Notes: generated from the sequence alone by a model not told the origin. A stretch of 64,000 nucleotides of DNA from Obrimoposthia wandeli (GCA_977020255.1 CDROCS010001089.1:124001-188000); one strand, 5' to 3'. Positions 47,776-61,085 are shown, counted from the stretch's first letter. Made by a program: numbers and translations.

Positions 47776-48675
47776 TCAACTCCCCTGCTTCACAAACCGT
47801 GTTAACTTCAAACCCCAGCCTAAATTCAATCCCGTTACACTTAACAAAATAACGATAACACCCAACCATTGATAGCTGGTTAAGCTTTGATCATACATCA
47901 CATAATCAACTAAAATAGCCACAGCAGGATATAAGAAAGCCAGTATCGCAATAATAGTAATAGGTAATTTTTGATACGCCGAATACATCAAAATATACAT
48001 AATACAAGTGTGCACAACGCCCAAGATAATTAGATAGCTCCAATTTAGCGCAGCCGTTGGAAGCGCGCCAAAATCGGCTAGTGGCATTAGCACAATAATA
48101 CCGATAAAAGTATTTACCAGCGCGATTACCTCAGGCCTTATATTAGTTAACTTCCTCGTTAGGAGCGTATTAATGGCATACAACACCGCTGCGCCTAAGG
48201 CCATGGCAAAACCAAGAATTTGCTGATTACCCGTAAAATCACTCAAGCCAATTTCCACAATCAGCAGTAAACCAATAAAGGCACTGACAAACCAGGGAAG
48301 TTTACCCAACGCTATCTTCTCACCAAATACGATACTGCCTGCTAAAATAAGAAAAAAGGGCTGCGTGTTATACACAACGGTTGCCAGCGAAATTGAAGCG
48401 TAACGATAAGCACTAAACAGTAGCACCCAGTTCAACACTAAAGCAATTGCCGCACATAAGGCAATGACTGTGGCTTTTCCTCTTAATGGCCATGGGCTTA
48501 AAAAGCCGCGCCACCAGCAATATAACCCTAAACTAATGGCGCCAAACAAGCAGCGAAAGAAAATCACATTCCACACTGACTGCTCAGATTCAATAACAAA
48601 AAAACCGATAAACCCTGAGAGAATCATCGCGGTACTCATCTCCAAAGTACCTACTTGTTTTGCGGTTAACTGCAT
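47776..48675 (-). CDS. EamA/DMT family transporter
   Basis: Ten hydrophobic segments, YNTQPFF and YLYP/FLYPAVA-type repeats. Confidence 0.88.
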   Translation of the reverse strand: MQLTAKQVGTLEMSTAMILSGFIGFFVIESEQSVWNVIFFRCLFGAISLGLYCWWRGFLSPWPLRGKATVIALCAAIALVLNWVLLFSAYRYASISLATVVYNTQPFFLILAGSIVFGEKIALGKLPWFVSAFIGLLLIVEIGLSDFTGNQQILGFAMALGAAVLYAINTLLTRKLTNIRPEVIALVNTFIGIIVLMPLADFGALPTAALNWSYLIILGVVHTCIMYILMYSAYQKLPITIIAILAFLYPAVAILVDYVMYDQSLTSYQWLGVIVILLSVTGLNLGWGLKLTRFVKQGS

Positions 48676-48833
48676 ACCTACCTCTTAATTATTTGACGCT
48701 TGAAAGCCTGAGCGCATAGCGAGTAATTCTTGCTGCTAATAGCATCAATTATCCCAGAAAAAACGTTAGAAGATATAACGTAAATTAGGCTACTATCAGT
48801 AACTGCCTTTTATAATATTGAGAAAATACCATT

Positions 48834-49292
48834 ATGCCTACGAATAGCCAGAACATTAAAATTGACGCTATCGACCGTAAAATAATTAAGGTTCTAAGTG
48901 ATAATGCCCGATTGCCAACCAGCACTATTGCCGCACAAATTGGCATGTCTGCACCTAGTGTTGCTGAGCGAATCAAACGCTTGGAGGAAAGCGGCGTGAT
49001 AAGTAAATTTACAGTGCAGCTCAATCACGAATTAATCGGTTATCCTTTTAGCGCGATTGTAAGAATAAAACCCTTGCCTGGAAAAATCCATATTTTACAA
49101 CAGCGTTTGATCGAAATGGATAACTGCTTAGAGTGCGACAAAGTCACCGGCGATGATTGCTTTATAGCACGCTTAGTTCTTAAATCAATCCCTCAGCTAG
49201 ATGAAGTGCTAGACAAGATTGTTGATATGGCAGAAACCAGCACAGCAATTATTAAGCTGTCACCAGTGAAGCGGCGTAATCCTCCTTTTTGA
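48834..49292 (+). CDS. Lrp/AsnC family regulator
   Basis: IDAIDRKII, SAPSVAERIKRLEESGVI and ECDKVTGDDCF. Confidence 0.92.
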   Translation: MPTNSQNIKIDAIDRKIIKVLSDNARLPTSTIAAQIGMSAPSVAERIKRLEESGVISKFTVQLNHELIGYPFSAIVRIKPLPGKIHILQQRLIEMDNCLECDKVTGDDCFIARLVLKSIPQLDEVLDKIVDMAETSTAIIKLSPVKRRNPPF

Positions 49293-49451: not shown

Positions 49452-50450
49452 TTAAAGACTGCTGCGTAGCGATACTAATTCAAACAAACAGTCTCCGCGC
49501 TGAGTCAATGCCATTGCCCGCTGACAAATAACAATCCCTTCTACCTCAGTATACACTTTGGTCACCTCAGATAAAGGCGTTTGCGGATGGTAAATACAAG
49601 CGAGTAATTGCCCTTTATCAACCCAGTCACCTAGCTTCACCTGCGGCTCGAATAAACCATCAGTGTAAGAAAATATTAACTGCTCATCCATACTTTCTAC
49701 GTACCTAGTTGCATTGGGAAGCTTAAGTTCAACAGAGTTCTTACACAGCTGTACAGCTGAAAAAAAGCGTAATAGGGAGCATTGGAATTTCTGTCTATAT
49801 TGACTATTCACCCGTCCGCCACCACCGAGTTCGACAGTCACTGCACAGGCTCCTTGACGATAAGCTGCTGAGGTAGCAAACCAGCCTTGGGTATCTTCAC
49901 TAAATAACAATGTATGAGGTAATGCCAAGCTTTCTAGCATCACTTTTAGCCGCTCTTGGTGCGCTGCACTGCCTTCTATATTAGCCATCGCTAGTGGCAA
50001 ATATTCAAGGGACTGACCTCCAGAGTGGATATCGATAAAGTAATCAGCACCCGCTAACAGCACCGTTTCAATATAATTTGCCATCACCGCAGTCGTTGTC
50101 CCCTGTGAATCGCCTGGGAAGATCCGATTTAAATTAAGCTGGTCCAAAGGTGAGGTGCGCTGCCCAGCTTGCGCGGCTGGGAAGTTTGCCATCGGTAACA
50201 AGATAAGCTGTCCTGCAATGTCTGCAGCCTCGATAGTGGCTATCAATTGTTGAACGATAATCTGCCCTTCGTACTCGTCCCCATGATTACCGGCCATCAC
50301 TACAATCTTAGGCCCATGGCCGCGCTTAATACTGACAATGGGAACAGGTATCCATCCATAAGCTGAACGAGATACTGAATGGGCTAAACGTAGATAGCCA
50401 CAATGCTTACCTTGTGCATCAAAATCTACTTCACTGGTTATTAACGACAA
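49452..50450 (-). CDS. Succinylglutamate desuccinylase/aspartoacylase family deacylase (DoeB-like)
   Basis: GNHGDEYEG, NLNRIFPG, DIHSGG and VELGGG. Confidence 0.88.
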   Translation of the reverse strand: MSLITSEVDFDAQGKHCGYLRLAHSVSRSAYGWIPVPIVSIKRGHGPKIVVMAGNHGDEYEGQIIVQQLIATIEAADIAGQLILLPMANFPAAQAGQRTSPLDQLNLNRIFPGDSQGTTTAVMANYIETVLLAGADYFIDIHSGGQSLEYLPLAMANIEGSAAHQERLKVMLESLALPHTLLFSEDTQGWFATSAAYRQGACAVTVELGGGGRVNSQYRQKFQCSLLRFFSAVQLCKNSVELKLPNATRYVESMDEQLIFSYTDGLFEPQVKLGDWVDKGQLLACIYHPQTPLSEVTKVYTEVEGIVICQRAMALTQRGDCLFELVSLRSSL

Positions 50451-50541
50451 AGGGACTTACCTCACGGTGCTAACAAGTTCACGCCCTAAAGGGCGGGGAA
50501 TTAGACCCTTGATGATTTAGGCTCCGCCTAATTCATCTCTA

Positions 50542-51570
50542 TTAAATTTGAATCGCAGCGATAAAGCCTGCCACATCACTCTCTTTAGTCGCCCAACTAG
50601 TGACTAATCGATAGCAATCTTGACCTTCCACTGGCCAGTGATACAAAGCATAACCTTGCTCTTTTGCACTTTGCCATTGCGCGGTGCTCAAAGATACAAA
50701 TAGCTGATTGGTTTGAGCGGGAAAATAACAAGTGCCGAGGCCTTTCTCAACTATCTTATCAGCCACTAGCTTCGCCATTTGGTTGGCATGGCTGGCGTTT
50801 TTCAGCCACAGGTCATTCTCAAAATATCCAAGTAATTGAGCGGATAAAAATCTCATCTTAGACGCTAAATGGCCAGTTTGTTTAGCATGCGCTCGTATAT
50901 TAGCGGCCAGAGAGGGATCAAAAACGACCAGAGCTTCAGCTCCAAAAGTGCCGTTTTTGCTGGCACCAAACGTCATGGCATCCACTCCACTGCGACAACT
51001 TAAATCCCCGGGGTGACAGCCAATAGATGCCACTGCGTTGGCAAATCTAGCGCCATCGACAAAGTATTTCAATTGGTGACGCTGGCAAATTTCACCCAGC
51101 TCATTGGTCTGCTCACAGCTGTAACTACGGCCATACTCTGTTGCTTGAGTGATCGCTAAAACCGCAGGCGGCGGGCTGTGTATGTCGGTGATATCAAGCG
51201 CTTGTAGGTATTCATTGAGCAATTGACTATCAATTCTGTCTAGATCGGTTCCCAGTGTAGTAAGCCTAGCACCGCCGGTAAATAGCTGCGGTGCTGTGCT
51301 TTCAGAAACCGCTAAATGGCTATTAGGATGACAGATAATACTTTGCCGACCATGACACATTTGTCCTAGCGCTAGACAGTTAGCAGCCGTGCCTGTCAAT
51401 ACTGGAAATACGAAGACTTGTTGATCAAAAATAGCCGAGACGCAATCATTGAGCTGCGCAGTTAAAACGTCATCACCATAAGGTAAGTCATAGCCGCTTT
51501 GGGCATGTTTCTCGACATAGCGCCAGACCTCTGGGCTTGCTGGTGCAGTATTGTCTGATAAAAACATCAC
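50542..51570 (-). CDS. Low-specificity L-threonine aldolase family (PLP)
   Basis: FLSDN, GTAANCLAL, TQATEYG, DGARFANA, PLP lysine GASKNG and SKMRFLSAQ. Confidence 0.88.
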   Translation of the reverse strand: MMFLSDNTAPASPEVWRYVEKHAQSGYDLPYGDDVLTAQLNDCVSAIFDQQVFVFPVLTGTAANCLALGQMCHGRQSIICHPNSHLAVSESTAPQLFTGGARLTTLGTDLDRIDSQLLNEYLQALDITDIHSPPPAVLAITQATEYGRSYSCEQTNELGEICQRHQLKYFVDGARFANAVASIGCHPGDLSCRSGVDAMTFGASKNGTFGAEALVVFDPSLAANIRAHAKQTGHLASKMRFLSAQLLGYFENDLWLKNASHANQMAKLVADKIVEKGLGTCYFPAQTNQLFVSLSTAQWQSAKEQGYALYHWPVEGQDCYRLVTSWATKESDVAGFIAAIQI

Positions 51571-51685
51571 TCTATCCTTGGTGAAAATAATAATTATTGT
51601 GGCTATGCAAATTTTTGGAGGTTTTTTTAAATATAAAAAAATCGTTCAAGACAGTTGATCATTGAGCATTTTCTTCATAATATAC

Positions 51686-51705
51686 TTATTATACATTTGA
51701 ATAAC
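51686..51705. promoter_or_regulatory. Operator candidate upstream of the dioxygenase
   Basis: TTATTATACATTTGAATAAC, an imperfect palindrome 15/20 identical to 53660-53679. Confidence 0.55.
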
Positions 51706-51722
51706 AAGAGGAGTTTTGGCTA

Positions 51723-52853
51723 ATGATGATACAAACTGCAACCGCCTCATTCGAAGGCTTGGTGGTCATTTGGGCTGATAAAAGTTCGAAGACATTCCCA
51801 TGGCTTTGGGTGATGGATCACGGTGAAGACGAGAAAAGCATGAATAGCCAAACCTTACAGAGAAACATTGATACCTTCTCACTCAATCAAGATCTAAGAG
51901 GGGTGCAGGTCACATTACTCGATCAAGAGCAGCAAATTGATATTAGCTGGAACAACGGTGAGCAAACGACTATTTCTTGTTTACGACTCGCTCAGGTAGT
52001 TGGTAAAGCGCTCGATGATAATCAACTCTCACACGCAACCAACAAGGTGCTCTGGCAACAAGATGCCATGCTCAATGAAGTTCCCAGTATTGACTATCAA
52101 GAAATCGTCGACGGCGATCAGGGCGTTTTGAATTGGCTGAGCCAGATTGATCGATATGGTTTTTGTTTGGTTAACGGGACGACAGCCAGTGAACAAGGTA
52201 CCGTTAATTTAGCCGAGCAACTTGCGCCTGCTCAACGCACAATTTTCGGTACTTATTGGCCGTTATCCACTGAAGTTAAACACCACGACGATACGGCGTA
52301 TACGACCAGCTTTCTGTCCCCTCATACCGATGCATCATATCACTGCAATGCTCCGGGCTTACAAATGTTCAATTGCCTGGAGTTTGATGGGCAAGGGGGA
52401 GAGAGCTTAATTGTAGATGGCTTCGCCATTGCTGAAAAAATCCGCCAACAGCGACCCGACCTTTATCAAGTACTCTGCCAAGTCAATGTGCCAGGTCACT
52501 ATAAAGAAGACCATGTTCACTTAGCGGCACAGCGCCCGGCTATTCGACACGATCGTCACGGCGATCTTGAACAAATCACTTTCAACAATTACGACCGCTC
52601 ACCATTTTTATTACCGGATGCGCAACAGGCTCTGTTTTACGAAGCTTACGCAGAATTTAACCGCCACAGTATGAATCAGGCTAATTGGATCAAAATTCCT
52701 TTACGACCAGGTATGGCCTTAATTTTTGATAACTGGCGCTGCCTACACGGAAGAATGAGCTATTCAGGTAAACGTTATTTCTACGGCTGCTACCATGACC
52801 ATGCTGAATATCAAAGCAGGATACGGACGCTACAAAAGGAGCTTTCCTCTTAG
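51723..52853 (+). CDS. Fe(II)/2-oxoglutarate dioxygenase, trimethyllysine dioxygenase-like (TMLD/BBOX family)
   Basis: GBBH-like N-domain (WLWVMDH..TLQR), DTAYT..PHTDASY (HxD), DGFAIAE, FNNYDR, DNWRCLHGR and RYFYGCY. Confidence 0.85.
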   Translation: MMIQTATASFEGLVVIWADKSSKTFPWLWVMDHGEDEKSMNSQTLQRNIDTFSLNQDLRGVQVTLLDQEQQIDISWNNGEQTTISCLRLAQVVGKALDDNQLSHATNKVLWQQDAMLNEVPSIDYQEIVDGDQGVLNWLSQIDRYGFCLVNGTTASEQGTVNLAEQLAPAQRTIFGTYWPLSTEVKHHDDTAYTTSFLSPHTDASYHCNAPGLQMFNCLEFDGQGGESLIVDGFAIAEKIRQQRPDLYQVLCQVNVPGHYKEDHVHLAAQRPAIRHDRHGDLEQITFNNYDRSPFLLPDAQQALFYEAYAEFNRHSMNQANWIKIPLRPGMALIFDNWRCLHGRMSYSGKRYFYGCYHDHAEYQSRIRTLQKELSS

Positions 52854-52940
52854 GAAACATCCCTTATCTGCCCGCTGCTACCTCTCACAGTCAGCGCTGT
52901 GAGGGGCTATCTCACAGCCTCTAAAACCTAGAGAGAAGCA

Positions 52941-53570
52941 CTATAGATTCTCTAACTTTAAAAGAGACTGCACCGACGAAACACCCAGTTCTATAAACTC
53001 TTCTTGATCAAAGAGCTCTATTGCCATGCAACCTTCGACCCAAAGTCCATCAATTAGCGCGTTCACTGCAATGGATAGTCTCTTAATTTTTTGTTTATCT
53101 AACTCTCTTCCAAGTTCGATAAAGACCTCAAGTATTAGTGCTTCACAGACGTTGCGAAATTCGAGATAGGCCTCTCGATGAATGATTGAAATTTCTGGTA
53201 CTGCATTCATCAAACTGGTGAATGACGCCCATAACTTATGATTACGTGGCTGCATAACTGGTGGTTTCAAAGAGGTTTCAATGAACAATCGTAACCTAGA
53301 ACAAGCTGTTGATTCACAATGCTCCAAGACCTGCACTGCCTGTTGAGTCATCGTTGACATTGTCACTTGGTAGGTCGCGCGTAATAATGATGCTTTATCG
53401 GGAAAATAGTGGCGTAACAGTCCGGGCGTCACTCCTGCTATATCTGCTATCTTACGCGTGGTCGCAGCACCTATACCACCTTGTATAATACATTCTTGAG
53501 TGGCGAAAATTAGATCTGCGCGTCTCTCTTCCTCGCTAGCGCGGCGAAACGATCGTCGTGGGGTGGTCAT
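52941..53570 (-). CDS. TetR-family regulator, BetI-like
   Basis: RRADLIFAT..ATTRKIADIAGVTPGLLRHYFPDK HTH and a BetI-type C-domain (ALIDGLWVE). Confidence 0.85.
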   Translation of the reverse strand: MTTPRRSFRRASEEERRADLIFATQECIIQGGIGAATTRKIADIAGVTPGLLRHYFPDKASLLRATYQVTMSTMTQQAVQVLEHCESTACSRLRLFIETSLKPPVMQPRNHKLWASFTSLMNAVPEISIIHREAYLEFRNVCEALILEVFIELGRELDKQKIKRLSIAVNALIDGLWVEGCMAIELFDQEEFIELGVSSVQSLLKLENL

Positions 53571-53659
53571 AGTTTCTAGGTTCCAACAATAGTCGAGACA
53601 ATCGAAATATATTACTCGATTTTAGTCATTCGACCAAATATTATCAATACAGCTGTTGC

Positions 53660-53679
53660 TTGTTATACGATTGAGTAAT
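53660..53679. promoter_or_regulatory. Operator candidate upstream of the ABC operon
   Basis: TTGTTATACGATTGAGTAAT, matching 51686-51705. Confidence 0.55.
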
Positions 53680-53683
53680 AGTA

Positions 53684-54520
53684 TTGATGGATAACTTTAG
53701 AGGTAAAGCAATGCTGGCAAGCAACAATAAAAAACAAAAAATTGCCGATTCCACCACCCACGATGTAGCAATAAGCATTCGCGGTCTAAGAAAATCATAC
53801 GATGGAATTGAAGTATTAAAAGGCGTTGATTTAACGGCAAAACAAGGCGATATCATCGCTATTATAGGGGGGAGTGGTTCTGGTAAATCGACTTTACTAC
53901 GCTGTATCAATCTATTGGAAATACCCTCGGCTGGAGAAGTCGCAATCAATGGCGAAGTTATTCGCATGAAGCAGACTTCTGAAGGCCCCAAGCCCGCAGA
54001 TAAAAAACAAGTCAAGCGCCTTAGATCTAAGCTGGCAATGGTTTTTCAAAACTTTAACTTGTGGCAGCACCTTACATTAATAGAAAACCTTACTGCAGCT
54101 CCCACTATTGTGCATGGCATCGATAAAAAAAGCGCCATACAACTGGCCAAACAATTATTAAAACGGGTCGGCCTAAGCGATAAAGAACAAAGTTACCCTG
54201 CTTTTTTGTCGGGCGGTCAGCAACAACGTGTTGCTATTGCCAGGGCTGTGGCTGTTCAGCCCAGCGTGATGTTATTTGATGAACCCACTTCAGCACTAGA
54301 CCCTGAGTTAGTTGGTGAAGTTCTCAAAGTGATAGAGGACCTCGCGAATGAAGGTCGCACCATGATACTCGTCACCCATGAAATGAAATTTGCCCGTGAA
54401 GTAGCCAGCCATGTCGTCTTTCTCCATCAAGGTGTTATTGAAGAAGAAGGCCCCCCTGAGCAAATATTTAATCAGCCCAAATCAGAACGTTTGAAGCAAT
54501 TTATCAGTTCCGTTCGATAA
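53684..54520 (+). CDS. Polar amino-acid ABC transporter ATPase (HisP/AotP-like; likely start ATG 53711)
   Basis: [22 protein letters not shown] and [25 protein letters not shown] precedes 53711. Confidence 0.93.
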
Positions 54521-54563
54521 TTCAGCTGAAAACAATTTTTTTACCATTAGGAGATAATAATAA

Positions 54564-55346
54564 ATGAAGATTCTAAATAAACATGCCGTCGTTGGTGCCT
54601 TGATGGCCATGGTCGTCGCACCATCAGCTTTCGCTGATGTTGTTAAAGTCGGCATTGCTGCTGAACCTTACCCTCCCTTTGCTTCAACCGATGTCTCTGG
54701 TAAATGGCAAGGTTGGGAAGTCGATATGATAGGCGCCATTTGCACGACCGCTAAGCTCGATTGCAAAATTACTCCGATCGCTTGGGATGGAATCATTCCA
54801 GCACTCAATAGTAAAAAAATTGATATGGTAATGGCATCATTATCGATTACCCCTGACCGCCTTAAAGTCATCGACTTCTCAGATAAATACTACAATACAC
54901 CTGCGGTAATTATCGGTGATAAGAACGTTGAAATTGGCGTGACAGCAGAGAGTATGAAAGGTAAAATCATTGGTGTCCAAAGCGGTACAATTCACCGTAA
55001 ATACGTACTAAAACACTTTGCTGATGCAGTGGATTCCATTAAAGAATACCAAACGCAAGATGAGGCAAACCAAGATTTAGCCGCTGGACGCATTGACGCA
55101 TTACAAGCGGATTCTCTCGCCATGGCAGATTTTGTAAGTTCAGACCAAGGAAAAATGTGTTGTGAAGTTAAAGGCGAAGTCGCCGCTGACTTAGACATCT
55201 TAGGCCCAGGTGTGGGTGCCGGTATACGCAAAGGTGATGACGCGTTGAGAACGGCGGTAAATTCTGCCATTAAAACGCTGCGTGAGAATGGCGAGTACAT
55301 GAAAATTTCTAAAAAATACTTTAGCTTTGACCCATACGGCAGCTAA
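54564..55346 (+). CDS. Polar amino-acid ABC substrate-binding protein (family 3, LAO/HisJ-like)
   Basis: Signal peptide, EPYPPF, WDGIIPAL, SLSITPDR, GVQSGT and DLAAGRID. Confidence 0.92.
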   Translation: MKILNKHAVVGALMAMVVAPSAFADVVKVGIAAEPYPPFASTDVSGKWQGWEVDMIGAICTTAKLDCKITPIAWDGIIPALNSKKIDMVMASLSITPDRLKVIDFSDKYYNTPAVIIGDKNVEIGVTAESMKGKIIGVQSGTIHRKYVLKHFADAVDSIKEYQTQDEANQDLAAGRIDALQADSLAMADFVSSDQGKMCCEVKGEVAADLDILGPGVGAGIRKGDDALRTAVNSAIKTLRENGEYMKISKKYFSFDPYGS

Positions 55347-55360
55347 TCGACATATTAATC

Positions 55361-55382
55361 GCGGCCTATTTATATAGGCCGC
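55361..55382 (+). terminator. Stem-loop after the SBP gene
   Basis: GCGGCCTAT-TTAT-ATAGGCCGC. Confidence 0.5.
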
Positions 55383-55435
55383 TTGTCATATCTTTGCTTA
55401 TATCTAGCATCTTTTTTATCGCGCGTTGATCCCTC

Positions 55436-56188
55436 TTGGGAGAGTCAGTTTTGGATACCATATCTTCGTTTTTCGAAAGTTTACAATTACTATCACTCAC
55501 ACCTCCTGGCTGGGGCGGTAATTTATTAAGGGGCTTATTGCACTCCTTAGAAATAGCCTTAGGAGGGTATTCATTCGGCTTAGTGATTGGTGTATTGGGT
55601 GCTTGCGGAAAGCTCTATGCTGGCGCGTTCGTACGGGATACTCTCGCCTGCTACACCACGTTAGTGCGCGCAGTACCTGAACTCATTCTCATTTTACTAT
55701 TTTACTATGCGGGTACTGACTTACTTAACCAGTTTATGCATTTAATCGGCCGGGATCCTATCGATGTCGATGGTTTAGTCGCTGGCATATTTGTTATTGG
55801 TTTAGTACAAGGTGCCTATGCTACTGAAGTTATCCGCGGCGCTATATTAGCGGTGCCAAAAGGTCAGCTAGAAGCTGCTAGAGCCTATGGGTTTTCATTT
55901 TGGCAAACGATGCGTAGTATCACATTACCCGCCATGCTGCCTTACGCGATCCCTGGGCTAGCGAACCTCTGGTTGATTGCAACTAAAGACACTGCTTTAT
56001 TAGCTGTAGTCGGTTTTAGCGAACTCACGTTAGAGACAAAACAAGCCGCCGGTTCAACTAAACACTATATGCTGTTTTACTGCGCGGCAGGCGTGCTCTA
56101 CTTGATGGTGACGTTAATTTCTAACCAACTAATTCAACGTATTGAAGCTTGGTCCAGACGTGGTTTTGCTGAGAGAGGCGCATCATGA
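55436..56188 (+). CDS. Amino-acid ABC permease (HisQ-like)
   Basis: RAVPEL and EAA loop GAYATEVIRGAILAVPKGQLEAARAYG. Confidence 0.92.
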   Translation: MGESVLDTISSFFESLQLLSLTPPGWGGNLLRGLLHSLEIALGGYSFGLVIGVLGACGKLYAGAFVRDTLACYTTLVRAVPELILILLFYYAGTDLLNQFMHLIGRDPIDVDGLVAGIFVIGLVQGAYATEVIRGAILAVPKGQLEAARAYGFSFWQTMRSITLPAMLPYAIPGLANLWLIATKDTALLAVVGFSELTLETKQAAGSTKHYMLFYCAAGVLYLMVTLISNQLIQRIEAWSRRGFAERGAS

Positions 56189-56958
56189 TTACTCCCAAGC
56201 CTTTTTGGAGTCCACATCGATTCCTGCTTGCCGCTATCGGTATTGGCATTATTATCAGCTGCGCAATTTTCATGCGCTGGGACTGGCTACCCGATTATTA
56301 CGAGATAATATTAGCGGGTATTTGGCGAACAATTTGGTTACTAGTGATCAGTGTTGCTCTTGGCTTTGCCCTTGCGCTACCGATTGGCCTTGTCCAAGTG
56401 CGAGGCCCCAAGCCTCTGGCTATTTTAGCCCGTCAATTTTGTACCATAATTCGCGGTACCCCGTTGCTATTACAGCTGTGGTTACTCTATTACGGTTTAG
56501 GCTCGGTGTTCTCAACCATTCCCGAAATACGGGGTTCAGCAATGTGGCCGTATTTGCGCCAAGCTTGGCCTTATGCACTGTTGTGTTTAACCTTATCGTT
56601 TGCCGCTTATGAAGGGGAAATAATGCGTGGTGCCTTCCTCGGTGTACCTAAGGGAGAGCTTGAAGCTGGTCGTGCATATGGCTTTAGCGAAATGCAGTTG
56701 TTTCGTAAAATATGGCTACCTAGGGCGATTCAGCGAGCGCTACCAACACTGGGGGGCGAAGTAGTACTGCAGTTAAAGGCGACTCCGCTGGTAGCGACCA
56801 TTACCATGATTGATGTTTACGGTGCTTTTTCAAAGGTTCGCCAAGATATTTTCATTACTTACGAGCCTTTACTGCTGTTAGCGTTGATATATATGATTAT
56901 TGCTGGTTTTTTAGTGATGCTTTTTCGCTACATGGAAAACCGCCTTCCGACACAATAG
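56185..56958 (+). CDS. Amino-acid ABC permease (HisM-like)
   Basis: RGTPLLLQL and AAYEGEIMRGAFLGVPKGELEAGRAYG; overlaps the upstream permease by 4 bp. Confidence 0.92.
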   Translation: MITPKPFWSPHRFLLAAIGIGIIISCAIFMRWDWLPDYYEIILAGIWRTIWLLVISVALGFALALPIGLVQVRGPKPLAILARQFCTIIRGTPLLLQLWLLYYGLGSVFSTIPEIRGSAMWPYLRQAWPYALLCLTLSFAAYEGEIMRGAFLGVPKGELEAGRAYGFSEMQLFRKIWLPRAIQRALPTLGGEVVLQLKATPLVATITMIDVYGAFSKVRQDIFITYEPLLLLALIYMIIAGFLVMLFRYMENRLPTQ

Positions 56959-57088: not shown

Positions 57089-57116
57089 CGCACTGTGAAA
57101 TAACAGTGCGCCTTTT
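57089..57116 (+). terminator. Intrinsic terminator candidate
   Basis: CGCACTGT-GAAATA-ACAGTGCG followed by CCTTTT. Confidence 0.5.
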
Positions 57117-58605: not shown

Positions 58606-59880
58606 TTAACGTTCTTGCATTTTATCGCGCATACGCAAGTACTTATACGTCAGATTTGCCACTATCGGCCCAAGCACTCCACCATTCCAATCGCAACCAA
58701 AAGGCGCAAACTGCTGATAGTCATCATTTTCCTCGCAAATAGCTTGTGCTACTAATGTACCGCATATAGTCCCTGTGTTTAATCCGTGCCCGCCAAAAGA
58801 TGAACACAACCATCGGCCTTTGGTTTGTTGCTGCACGATAGGCATTTTATGCCCAGCATAAGCCATTAGCCCAGACCAAGAACGGGCAATTTTTACGTCA
58901 GCCAATTCTGGGTAAACAGAGGTTAGGTCTTGTGTGAGCATTTGTGATAAATGCTGCTCATTTGTTTGGTTATTGGTGGTAATACGCGATCCCCATAGCA
59001 GCTTATCGCCTTCAACTAAGCGATAGTAATCAGCGGCGCGTCTGTCATCTTTAATACTGTATTCTCTACTAATTAATTGCTTAGCTAAATCTCCTAACGG
59101 TTCAGTGACGACCATATAAGTGGCAATAGGTAAGAAAGAGCGCTTTAATGCTGGGGCCTCTTCGCCTGTATAACCGCCTCCGCAGAACACCACTTGATCA
59201 CACAATAGCTGCGCATCACTGGTTTGCACTTTATGCCTATCGCCATCGCTCGTTACTTTTTTGACTGCCGATTTCTCAAAGATCAAACCGCCTAGCTGCT
59301 CAATTTGCGCAGCGAGACCTAAACAGTAATTCAGAGGATGAAAATGAAATTCTTCAGAGCTAAACAAGCCTTCAAAATAGCGGGTTGTTCGACAGATATC
59401 TCTAACTTCATCTACTTCTAATAGTTGCAAATCATACTGGTATTTATCCGCCATGGTGTGCTGTTTTTTTAATAACTGTTCACGTTGTGGATAGCGCCCT
59501 GCTTGTAATCCACCATATTTTACATCGCAATTTTGCAGCTGATACTGGCTAATATTTTGTTTTATAATAGTGGCGCCCTTGCGTGATAATTCATACAGCG
59601 CCTTGGTCTTGCTCAAACCTAACTTAGCTTCAAGTGCATCATTACCTTGCGCCCAACCCGGTGAAACTAACCCGCCATTGCGCCCAGAAGCACCCCAAGC
59701 AACCGCTTCACTTTCAAGGATCGCAACACTTTTACCTTGTTTAAGCAATTCAAGAGCGCAGCTTAAACCGGCGATTCCCGCTCCCACAATACATACCTCA
59801 ACGGACATATCTTGGGTTAGCTTCGCCCTTGCTGGAGCGGTAATGGCAGTACTGGCATAGTATGTATTGGGATACTTCAT
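58606..59880 (-). CDS. FAD-dependent amine/amino-acid oxidoreductase (PuuB/DadA family)
   Basis: VCIVGAGIAG, GASGRNGG, FHFHPLNY and SFGGHGL. Confidence 0.88.
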   Translation of the reverse strand: MKYPNTYYASTAITAPARAKLTQDMSVEVCIVGAGIAGLSCALELLKQGKSVAILESEAVAWGASGRNGGLVSPGWAQGNDALEAKLGLSKTKALYELSRKGATIIKQNISQYQLQNCDVKYGGLQAGRYPQREQLLKKQHTMADKYQYDLQLLEVDEVRDICRTTRYFEGLFSSEEFHFHPLNYCLGLAAQIEQLGGLIFEKSAVKKVTSDGDRHKVQTSDAQLLCDQVVFCGGGYTGEEAPALKRSFLPIATYMVVTEPLGDLAKQLISREYSIKDDRRAADYYRLVEGDKLLWGSRITTNNQTNEQHLSQMLTQDLTSVYPELADVKIARSWSGLMAYAGHKMPIVQQQTKGRWLCSSFGGHGLNTGTICGTLVAQAICEENDDYQQFAPFGCDWNGGVLGPIVANLTYKYLRMRDKMQER

Positions 59881-60248
59881 GGATTACCTATCTTGATTAT
59901 CTGTGTTGATGAGCGAAAAAGTTAATTAGCGATGTAAAATTTGCTGCCGTATTATGATGAATACTCTTATACTAACCATGAGTTAACCCTTGGCGATAAT
60001 ATGAAGCTCCACTGGCTCGTTAAAGCTGTCGTACTCAAAAACAGGGGTATGTTAAATCCGCTTTGCTCTGGCAGCTTTGCCTTATTATCACTCATTACGC
60101 TATGTAAAGGTCTCTATATAATTCCTTGTGGGGATATCGATTTTAACTATAGGCTGTCAACTTCGATTTAACGCAAAAAAAGATACAATATATGAGCGGC
60201 TATTTATAGCATTTTTTTATTACCGGTCAATACTGGAGTTACCTAAAG

Positions 60249-61085
60249 TTGGATTTTAGATCATTACGTTATTTTGTCGCTGTGTTTGAAGAACAAAGCT
60301 TTAGTGCCGCTGCAAAACGTTGTTTTGTCGCACAACCTTCAATATCTGGTGCAGTACAACAGCTGGAAGCAGAGTTGGAATGCGCACTCTTTGTACGACA
60401 CTCTAAAGGGATAACGCCTACCACAGAGGGAACTCAGCTTTACCCTAAGGCTTGCCAAGTACTAGCTGACATTTCACAAATAAAGCAGCAGTTTCAAGAG
60501 ACACCTGAGCAGCTATCTTTTAAATTAGCACTGCTGCCGTTTTTATCGGGTAAACGCGTCTCGAAGCTTATTAAACAACTGATGCGTTCGCTGCCAAATT
60601 TAGATCTTACGCTCGTTGATATTAACGCCGAAGCAGATGCGCGTATTATCTCGCAAACAGTGCTACAAAAAGATGAAGTTTTCCACAAACTATGGGTGGA
60701 TAGATATGTGTTAGCAACACCGATTGATCATCCTATCGCCGACAATACCCATGTTAACTTAGCGCAGTTGAATAACTGCGCTTTTATCAGCCGCTCGCCT
60801 TGCGACATCATCGATTCTTGGCAATTTGCCATTGCTAAGCGCGGCTTAAATTTAAAGGTTAAAGCGACCGTTAAAACCGAAGAATACGCGTTGGATTTAG
60901 TGGCTGCAGGCTTAGGCGTTTCTATCGTTCCTTTACATTCACTGGATGGACGCACTGACTTAAGCTTTTGTGAAATTAATGATTTAAAATTAGAGCGTGT
61001 GGTCGGCTTGGCTTATACCAAAAATACCGCCGTGGCACCCAGCTTATTAGCGGCAATTACTAATATTGAAAAACAAAAGAAGTAA
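60249..61085 (+). CDS. LysR-family regulator (TTG start)
   Basis: LRYFVAVFEEQSFSAAAKRCFVAQPSIS HTH. Confidence 0.9.
   Translation: MDFRSLRYFVAVFEEQSFSAAAKRCFVAQPSISGAVQQLEAELECALFVRHSKGITPTTEGTQLYPKACQVLADISQIKQQFQETPEQLSFKLALLPFLSGKRVSKLIKQLMRSLPNLDLTLVDINAEADARIISQTVLQKDEVFHKLWVDRYVLATPIDHPIADNTHVNLAQLNNCAFISRSPCDIIDSWQFAIAKRGLNLKVKATVKTEEYALDLVAAGLGVSIVPLHSLDGRTDLSFCEINDLKLERVVGLAYTKNTAVAPSLLAAITNIEKQKK

Follow-up and report, generated by a model that had tools for sequence, protein, structure and literature searches.

The locus described here lies in a 64,000-nucleotide stretch of DNA from the Obrimoposthia wandeli assembly (GCA_977020255.1 CDROCS010001089.1:124001-188000; the whole stretch analysed is referred to as the window) and comprises eight genes at positions 49452-56958. 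It was taken from C1089, a bacterial contig of 752 kb in this assembly (G000; 1.35 Gb, 6912 contigs), which is eukaryote-sized and has bacterial contigs mixed in. Gene calls and family searches bore out the placement of all eight genes given in a preliminary description of the window. We class the cluster as a putative bacterial uptake regulon that would re-use the first steps of the carnitine pathway. Its closest public relative is a marine metagenome-assembled genome of the Oceanospirillaceae (L001), and the two dioxygenases are 95% identical. Three related bacteria within the assembly each carry the full cluster: in addition to the window, all eight genes are found in the same order on two further bacterial contigs (C462:7913-15446 and C6832:31320-38776), with 77-92% protein identity. 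The features of the locus, in window coordinates, are as follows.

49452..50450, minus strand: AstE/AspA-family zinc deacylase, DoeB-like but not DoeB (PF24827, 136 bits)
50542..51570, minus strand: pyridoxal phosphate (PLP)-dependent L-threonine/phenylserine-aldolase-type enzyme (Beta_elim_lyase; PF01212, 147 bits), proposed 3-hydroxy-trimethyllysine aldolase
51655..51683, plus strand: predicted dioxygenase promoter, read from the sequence (-35 TTGATC at 51655-51660, 17-bp spacer, -10 TAATAT at 51678-51683)
51688..51705, no strand assigned: operator 1, imperfect palindrome ATTATACATTTGAATAAC, conserved, just downstream of the dioxygenase -10 box
51723..52853, plus strand: Fe(II)/2-oxoglutarate (2OG) dioxygenase of the TauD family, assigned to the trimethyllysine hydroxylase (TMLH) clade by profile scores, residues and tree
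52941..53570, minus strand: TetR-family repressor with a BetI-type ligand domain (PF00440 and PF13977), presumed binder of both operators
53656..53684, plus strand: predicted promoter of the ATP-binding cassette (ABC) operon, from sequence and conservation (-35 TTGCTT at 53656-53661, -10 TAGTAT at 53679-53684)
53662..53679: operator 2, GTTATACGATTGAGTAAT, conserved, filling the -35/-10 spacer of the ABC promoter
53711..54520, plus strand: ABC ATPase, HisP-like, 269 aa (NF007908, 342 bits)
54564..55346, plus strand: periplasmic binding protein of the LAO/HisJ type (TIGR01096, 217 bits)
55436..56188, plus strand: ABC permease, HisQ-like (family model)
56185..56958, plus strand: ABC permease, HisM-like (family model)
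57089..57110, plus strand: terminator-like hairpin closing the ABC operon; synteny with L001 stops here

The dioxygenase (PF02668, 150 bits) scores best against the equivalog model of trimethyllysine dioxygenase (TMLD; TIGR02410, 255.6 bits), followed by the models of gamma-butyrobetaine hydroxylase (BBOX; TIGR02409, 232.5 bits, far under the cut-off of 414.75) and TmpA (226.7 bits). The motifs DTAYT..HTD, NNYDR and DNWRCLHGR, which had been quoted in the preliminary description, are all found in the protein. A phmmer comparison against 1.84 billion representative proteins matched it to named eukaryotic TMLH/TMLD of Balamuthia, oyster and Aplysia at 207-216 bits, and TMLD of Synchytrium, Melampsora and Penicillium were also among the matches listed; the names of these eukaryotic sequences are automatic annotation. 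Among solved structures, TmpA gave the top match with 148 bits, followed by human BBOX with 122 bits; TmpA and BBOX are the only solved structural relatives. No TMLH structure turned up in a search of the PDB. Some members of the dioxygenase family pass TIGR02410 and are named "trimethyllysine dioxygenase" by the NCBI and JGI pipelines.

A maximum-likelihood phylogeny of 46 sequences (IQ-TREE) separated eukaryotic TMLH and a bacterial clade containing the window's dioxygenase (support for this clade 100/98) from a side formed by Capsaspora BBOX, a bacterial BBOX-like enzyme and a TmpA-like enzyme, with support of 100/99 for the split. Since the tree places the dioxygenase with TMLH, it does not cluster with BBOX, and the earlier judgement that the enzyme is closer to TMLH than to BBOX is upheld by this split and by a TMLH-specific aspartate. 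The score below the TIGR02410 cut-off and the identity of only 33% to an animal TMLH lead us to place the dioxygenase as a bacterial sister group of TMLH, not as a demonstrated orthologue.

Alignment to human BBOX located the Fe triad (H201, D203 and H342, corresponding to H202, D204 and H347 of BBOX), the 2OG-binding arginine (R351; R360 in BBOX) and an aromatic cage (F175, W179, Y193 and Y357; Y177, W181, Y194 and Y366 in BBOX), the pattern of which is the same in the named eukaryotic TMLH (MAFFT alignment). N288, the carboxylate position, corresponds to N292 of BBOX, and D190 stands where BBOX has N191. All of these residues are invariant across 26 family members. For the equivalent residue of human TMLH, Asp231 (Asn191 in BBOX), a review (PMC7764450) gives binding of the alpha-ammonium group of trimethyllysine as the presumed role, by which the residue would set specificity and distinguish TMLH from BBOX. 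An aspartate occupies the D190 column in 138 of the 151 aligned sequences, including the named eukaryotic TMLH that were checked. Residues 1-100 of the dioxygenase (window 51723-52020) are without the Cys-rich motif of BBOX and oyster TMLH (WVMDHGEDEKS in the window, WLRDHCRCDVC in oyster TMLH). BBOX has a zinc site in its N-terminal Cys-rich region, and because the motif is missing, this site may be absent from the window's enzyme.

A second feature that unites the cluster is its operator. The preliminary description had pointed to a palindrome upstream of both the dioxygenase and the ABC operon, its two 20-mers being identical at 15/20 bases. Comparative footprinting of nine dioxygenase and seven ABC upstream regions, taken from loci with dioxygenases 64-95% identical to the window's, revealed that the motif is real and lies at a fixed position in 16/16 orthologous regions. 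Its consensus is an 18-bp palindrome, GTTATACA-NN-TGWATAAC, which is perfect in L006, and TTGATCATTGA and CATAATAT are conserved in the nine dioxygenase upstream regions. Scans of four related whole genomes (4.1-5.6 Mb) for the pattern TTATACANNYGWRTAA gave exactly two sites in each, one at the dioxygenase promoter and one at the ABC promoter, and a reversed control pattern gave 0-1 sites in the same genomes. A fifth genome (G004) contains one extra operator-like site, which is situated among small open reading frames (ORFs) and was rejected as a true operator and taken as chance. These comparisons supersede two simpler counts: within the window alone the number of palindromes is not significant (3 matches, 1.5 expected), and the exact pattern is not enriched in the 1.35-Gb assembly (75 matches, 112 for the control) because the assembly is mostly eukaryotic DNA. 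By comparative footprinting and genome scans, the palindrome behaves as a dedicated operator with a one-locus regulon.

The adjacent TetR protein presumably binds these operators. It is kept beside the dioxygenase across the window's clade, and its C-terminal domain is recognised as BetI-type by PF13977 (50 bits); its scores fall below the cut-offs of both BetI equivalog models (86.6 vs 118 and 85.3 vs 201.3 bits). On the minus strand, a promoter-like pair (TTGTTA-17 bp-TATATT, window 51679-51707) is directed towards the aldolase gene, and operator 1 lies within its spacer, so that one operator might control the divergent dioxygenase and aldolase promoters together.

The enzyme encoded divergently from the dioxygenase belongs to the threonine-aldolase family (PF01212) by both its score and its PLP-binding lysine. 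It matches the L-threonine aldolase of PDB entry 7yvr at 260 bits, with the PLP lysine of its GASKNG motif aligned to GATKNG, and falls below the equivalog model of E. coli LtaE (44 bits vs 312). The preliminary description had suggested looking for this gene pair in other genomes. A gene-neighbourhood comparison of 80 species-level loci showed that an aldolase adjoins the dioxygenase in 11 of them, and the same is true of C462, C6832, L133 and the complete genome G105. The aldolase-linked dioxygenases fall into two separate dioxygenase clades, and the genes are arranged either divergently or co-directionally, with the aldolase as upstream operon partner. The linked aldolases derive from at least two deep threonine-aldolase lineages, and homologues about 50% identical to the window's occur in unrelated housekeeping contexts; these observations point to repeated recruitment of aldolases to the dioxygenase, and such recruitment speaks for a beta-hydroxy-alpha-amino acid as the product of the dioxygenase. 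Cleavage of 3-hydroxy-trimethyllysine is carried out by SHMT in humans and by the threonine aldolase Tha1 in mouse (PMC11016064).

The four genes of the ABC operon encode a complete importer. Mechanical gene calling opens the ATPase ORF at a TTG codon at 53684, but a conserved GAGG and ATG, a start context kept in seven loci, make 53711 the likelier start and give a protein of 269 aa as in relatives. The binding protein scores 217.2 bits against TIGR01096 (cut-off 256.35). It retains the alpha-amino-acid-binding residues of HisJ (1hsl), with R99, D183, S92, S94 and Y36 corresponding to HisJ R77, D161, S70, S72 and Y14, and its side-chain pocket is altered (W74 for HisJ L52, E34 for HisJ D11, and Q139, I143 and H144).

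Downstream of the aldolase, on the same strand, lies the deacylase. Its best NCBIfam match is DoeB (TIGR02994, 228.6 bits, below the cut-off of 402.7), and no doeA, doeC or doeD gene was found in the surroundings of the cluster. The gene is probably co-transcribed with the aldolase, since the gap between the two is only about 21 bp in C462. Of the loci examined, the window, L001, C462, C6832 and L002 are the only ones with a deacylase next to the cluster. It belongs to a large uncharacterised family, relatives of which occur in modules composed of AsnC, aminotransferase, thiamine pyrophosphate (TPP) enzyme, deacylase and EamA genes. In the window the deacylase sits between the aldolase and an AsnC/EamA pair (47776-49292) that resembles this recurring module (L129:3366-9950; L002:5737-9811); the window keeps the module's deacylase, AsnC and EamA genes and is without its aminotransferase and TPP enzyme. 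The deacylase may free an N-acylated relative of the substrate.

Two further gene contexts bear on the substrate. A dimethylargininase gene is found between the dioxygenase and the TetR gene, or adjoining the cluster, in C462, L003, L004, L133 and G105, and this linkage indicates that the island as a whole handles methylated basic amino acids. In L003 (isolate AS21), the gene for a BBOX-like enzyme (395 bits, cut-off 415) is part of the aldolase operon, with a GbdR-type regulator next to it; the enzyme has a serine in the position 190 column. The presence of a BBOX-like gene in an aldolase operon fits a four-carbon betaine product and hence a six-carbon substrate. As a separate observation, a GbdR-like gene that is 36% identical to the L003 regulator starts near window 22558.

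The preliminary description had read the locus as a system for import, beta-hydroxylation and retro-aldol cleavage, and the tree, the active site, the aldolase linkage and the operator support this as the best available interpretation. In the proposed mechanism, the LAO/HisJ-type ABC system would import N-epsilon-trimethyl-L-lysine (TML) as a free alpha-amino acid, the TMLH-clade dioxygenase would hydroxylate it at C3, and the PLP-dependent aldolase would split 3-hydroxy-TML into glycine and 4-trimethylaminobutanal, which an unlinked aldehyde dehydrogenase would oxidise to gamma-butyrobetaine. The BetI-like TetR protein would occupy both palindromes, just downstream of the -10 box of the dioxygenase promoter and inside the -35/-10 spacer of the ABC promoter, and would leave them on binding the quaternary amine or a product. 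What the analysis establishes are the gene identities, the family placement, the conserved residues, the gene linkage, and the conservation and genome-wide specificity of the operator; the substrate, the hydroxylation site, the aldol products, the operator-binding protein and the inducer are what we infer. We regard it as quite probable that the locus takes up a quaternary or methylated basic L-amino acid, hydroxylates it at the beta position and cleaves it by a retro-aldol reaction, all under one TetR operator. The narrower proposal, a TetR-controlled regulon for uptake, C3 hydroxylation and retro-aldol cleavage of free TML, is the one that we favour, with a confidence that only just leans to its side.

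Several observations weigh against TML as the substrate, which is deduced from homology and context. The dioxygenase remains below the TIGR02410 equivalog cut-off (255.6 vs 268.3 bits), and eukaryotic TMLH are only 33-35% identical to it. In a Foldseek search of Swiss-Prot, TMLH, bacterial BBOX and TmpA were almost equally distant from it (27-28% identity) and could not be told apart; the phmmer scores and the tree did separate them. The aldolase is an ordinary enzyme of the L-threonine/phenylserine-aldolase type. In two close relatives, L005 and L006, no aldolase is linked to the cluster, although its dioxygenase, TetR and ABC genes are all present. At E 1e-20, the aldolase query found no homologue in the L005 genome (G003) and only a distant one (27% identity) in the L006 genome, so that another aldolase activity would be needed there. 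No aldehyde dehydrogenase is linked to the cluster, and the deacylase fits the eukaryotic scheme poorly, which has no step for it. Finally, the neighbours of the dioxygenase vary elsewhere in its family: some loci have a flavin mononucleotide (FMN)/Fe-S oxidoreductase or a GbcA-like Rieske oxygenase there, others an aminotransferase together with a TPP enzyme. With such varied neighbours the family need not share one substrate or downstream route. The pairing with the FMN/Fe-S oxidoreductase (about 690 aa) was seen in 19 loci, 5 of which also have the GbcA-like Rieske oxygenase; it includes L014, L023, L031, L037, L039 and Kiloniellaceae loci such as L053:6976-13000. These pairings suggest a demethylating downstream route in those lineages.

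Three other readings were weighed against the trimethyllysine regulon. The low identity to eukaryotic TMLH, the score below the TMLD cut-off, the varied gene contexts of the dioxygenase family and the dimethylargininase link, which indicates that the island also handles methylarginines, would all be compatible with the same chemistry acting on another substrate, such as N-epsilon-dimethyllysine, trimethylornithine, the delta-hydroxy-trimethyllysine of diatom silaffins or a methylarginine. We consider this unlikely, because the four residues of the trimethylammonium cage and the alpha-ammonium aspartate match TMLH, the BBOX-like gene of L003 fits a C4 betaine and thus a C6 substrate, and methylarginines are already served by the dimethylargininase. 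Alternatively, the enzymes and the substrate could be as proposed and the purpose could be osmoprotection, on the pattern of the bet regulon, with TML converted to gamma-butyrobetaine, or to carnitine where a BBOX-like gene is present, and glycine as by-product. The BetI-like regulator, the added BBOX-like hydroxylase and GbdR-type regulator of L003, the marine carriers with traces in ice and seawater metagenomes, and the finding that no gene for further betaine breakdown is linked to the cluster would suit this purpose. However, no sequence feature ties expression to salt, and scavenging of nutrients is the role suggested by the neighbouring dimethylargininase and deacylase genes; retention and degradation of a betaine are not distinguishable in DNA, and we rate osmoprotection as rather improbable.

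The third alternative supposes that the dioxygenase acts on a betaine without an alpha-amino group (gamma-butyrobetaine, 5-trimethylaminovalerate or a phosphonate) and that the aldolase and the ABC genes are unrelated neighbours. TmpA and BBOX are indeed the only relatives with solved structures, bacterial members of the superfamily, TmpA for example, have reportedly been misannotated before, and where an aminotransferase and a TPP enzyme are neighbours, as in some loci, these two could convert TML to such a betaine before the dioxygenase acts. Yet the tree groups the dioxygenase with TMLH and apart from BBOX and TmpA (100/99), Asp190 is invariant, aldolases have become linked repeatedly and independently, and a single operator serves dioxygenase and importer alike, all of which makes this explanation very improbable. 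Hercynine and ectoine were also considered as substrates on account of histidine-utilisation and ectoine genes upstream in L006 and L081. They were rejected because other relatives do not share this linkage and because a site for a free alpha-ammonium group is retained in the binding protein. In the L081 locus (L081:701-8397; DT_73), the dioxygenase is immediately preceded by histidine-utilisation genes and by ectoine-degradation-like genes, which encode a peptidase M24 protein and an AstE-like deacylase.

A wider view, which we put forward tentatively and regard as possible rather than probable, is that the cluster is one variant of a bacterial island with a modular build, by which basic amino acids carrying post-translational modifications would be scavenged once eukaryotic proteins release them. 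The modules could be exchanged for one another and would all depend on a single LAO-type importer and a single TetR with its operator. Trimethyllysine would be handled by a TMLH-like hydroxylase and an aldolase, methylarginines by a dimethylargininase and acylated forms by a deacylase. If so, bacteria with an added BBOX-like gene would carry out the carnitine pathway of eukaryotes, starting from trimethyllysine of a host or an alga.

The dioxygenase has a sporadic distribution, being present in 9/151 sampled genomes of the family. It is carried by marine bacteria, traces of it occur in metagenomes from ice and seawater, and the locus was found in no RNA run. Elsewhere on contig C1089, a second, BBOX-type paralogue was sought; the paralogue found is TmpA-like instead (C1089:739003-740868, L093:7003-8868; 357 bits, cut-off 400). 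The next gene encodes a protein of 219 aa that matched no NCBIfam model at E 1e-10, a choline-sulfate-type LysR regulator is adjacent, and the locus possibly encodes a trimethylaminoethylphosphonate route. An aldehyde dehydrogenase homologue lies near window 39439. Beyond the ABC operon, window 58606-61085 encodes a flavin adenine dinucleotide (FAD) oxidase that is distantly like L-pipecolate oxidase (189 bits, cut-off 600), divergent from a LysR regulator gene. Neither gene was found in L001, and since synteny ends just past the ABC operon, we place this pair outside the cluster.

Degradation of eukaryotic protein always sets trimethyllysine free, and in humans trimethylamine N-oxide is formed from it as a precursor. 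To our knowledge, its consumption by bacteria is poorly known; conversion of trimethyllysine to trimethylaminovalerate has reportedly been observed. The preliminary description knew of no characterised bacterial pathway with such a gene set, and our literature search, which was made without subscription journals, likewise found no paper on a bacterial trimethyllysine hydroxylase/aldolase pathway. If the proposal holds, a defined bacterial hydroxylase/aldolase route would be a testable trimethyllysine sink in the sea and in animal hosts and would provide soluble bacterial enzymes for the first carnitine steps, and the TetR protein and its operator could act as a trimethyllysine sensor. Cultured carriers are available in Aliamphritea ceti, A. 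hakodatensis and strain AS21.

The cluster can be compared with several known systems. Eukaryotic TMLH (TMLHE; EC 1.14.11.8), the first enzyme of carnitine biosynthesis, lies on the same side of the tree and shares the Fe triad, the 2OG arginine, the cage, the alpha-ammonium aspartate and the two-domain architecture (Foldseek TM-score of 0.80 to the human model). In contrast, the window's enzyme is bacterial, has neither a mitochondrial presequence nor the Cys-rich N-terminal motif of oyster TMLH, and is encoded in a predicted repressor-controlled uptake cluster rather than in a biosynthetic setting. As in the 3-hydroxy-trimethyllysine aldolases SHMT (human) and Tha1 (mouse) (PMC11016064), the window's aldolase is a PLP-dependent protein, here with a threonine-aldolase fold, that would cleave a beta-hydroxy-alpha-amino acid; it differs in being a dedicated gene linked to the hydroxylase and apparently recruited from bacterial L-threonine/phenylserine aldolases, and its activity on 3-hydroxy-TML is putative. 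The window's enzyme shares its dioxygenase superfamily and a quaternary-ammonium cage with bacterial gamma-butyrobetaine hydroxylase and with TmpA of the TmpA/TmpB pathway for 2-trimethylaminoethylphosphonate, but these two fall into another clade and have Asn or Ser where the window's enzyme has Asp190.

The regulation and transport of the cluster can be compared in the same way. The bet regulon, in which BetI governs choline uptake and conversion to glycine betaine, likewise has a BetI-type TetR protein over divergent uptake and conversion promoters (binding being predicted here), whereas the operator, the transporter class and the enzymes all differ and the BetI models remain below their cut-offs. 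The importer has the same four components as LAO/HisJ-HisQMP and keeps the residues for the alpha-carboxylate and alpha-ammonium groups, but its side-chain pocket is changed and its scores lie under the equivalog and subfamily cut-offs.

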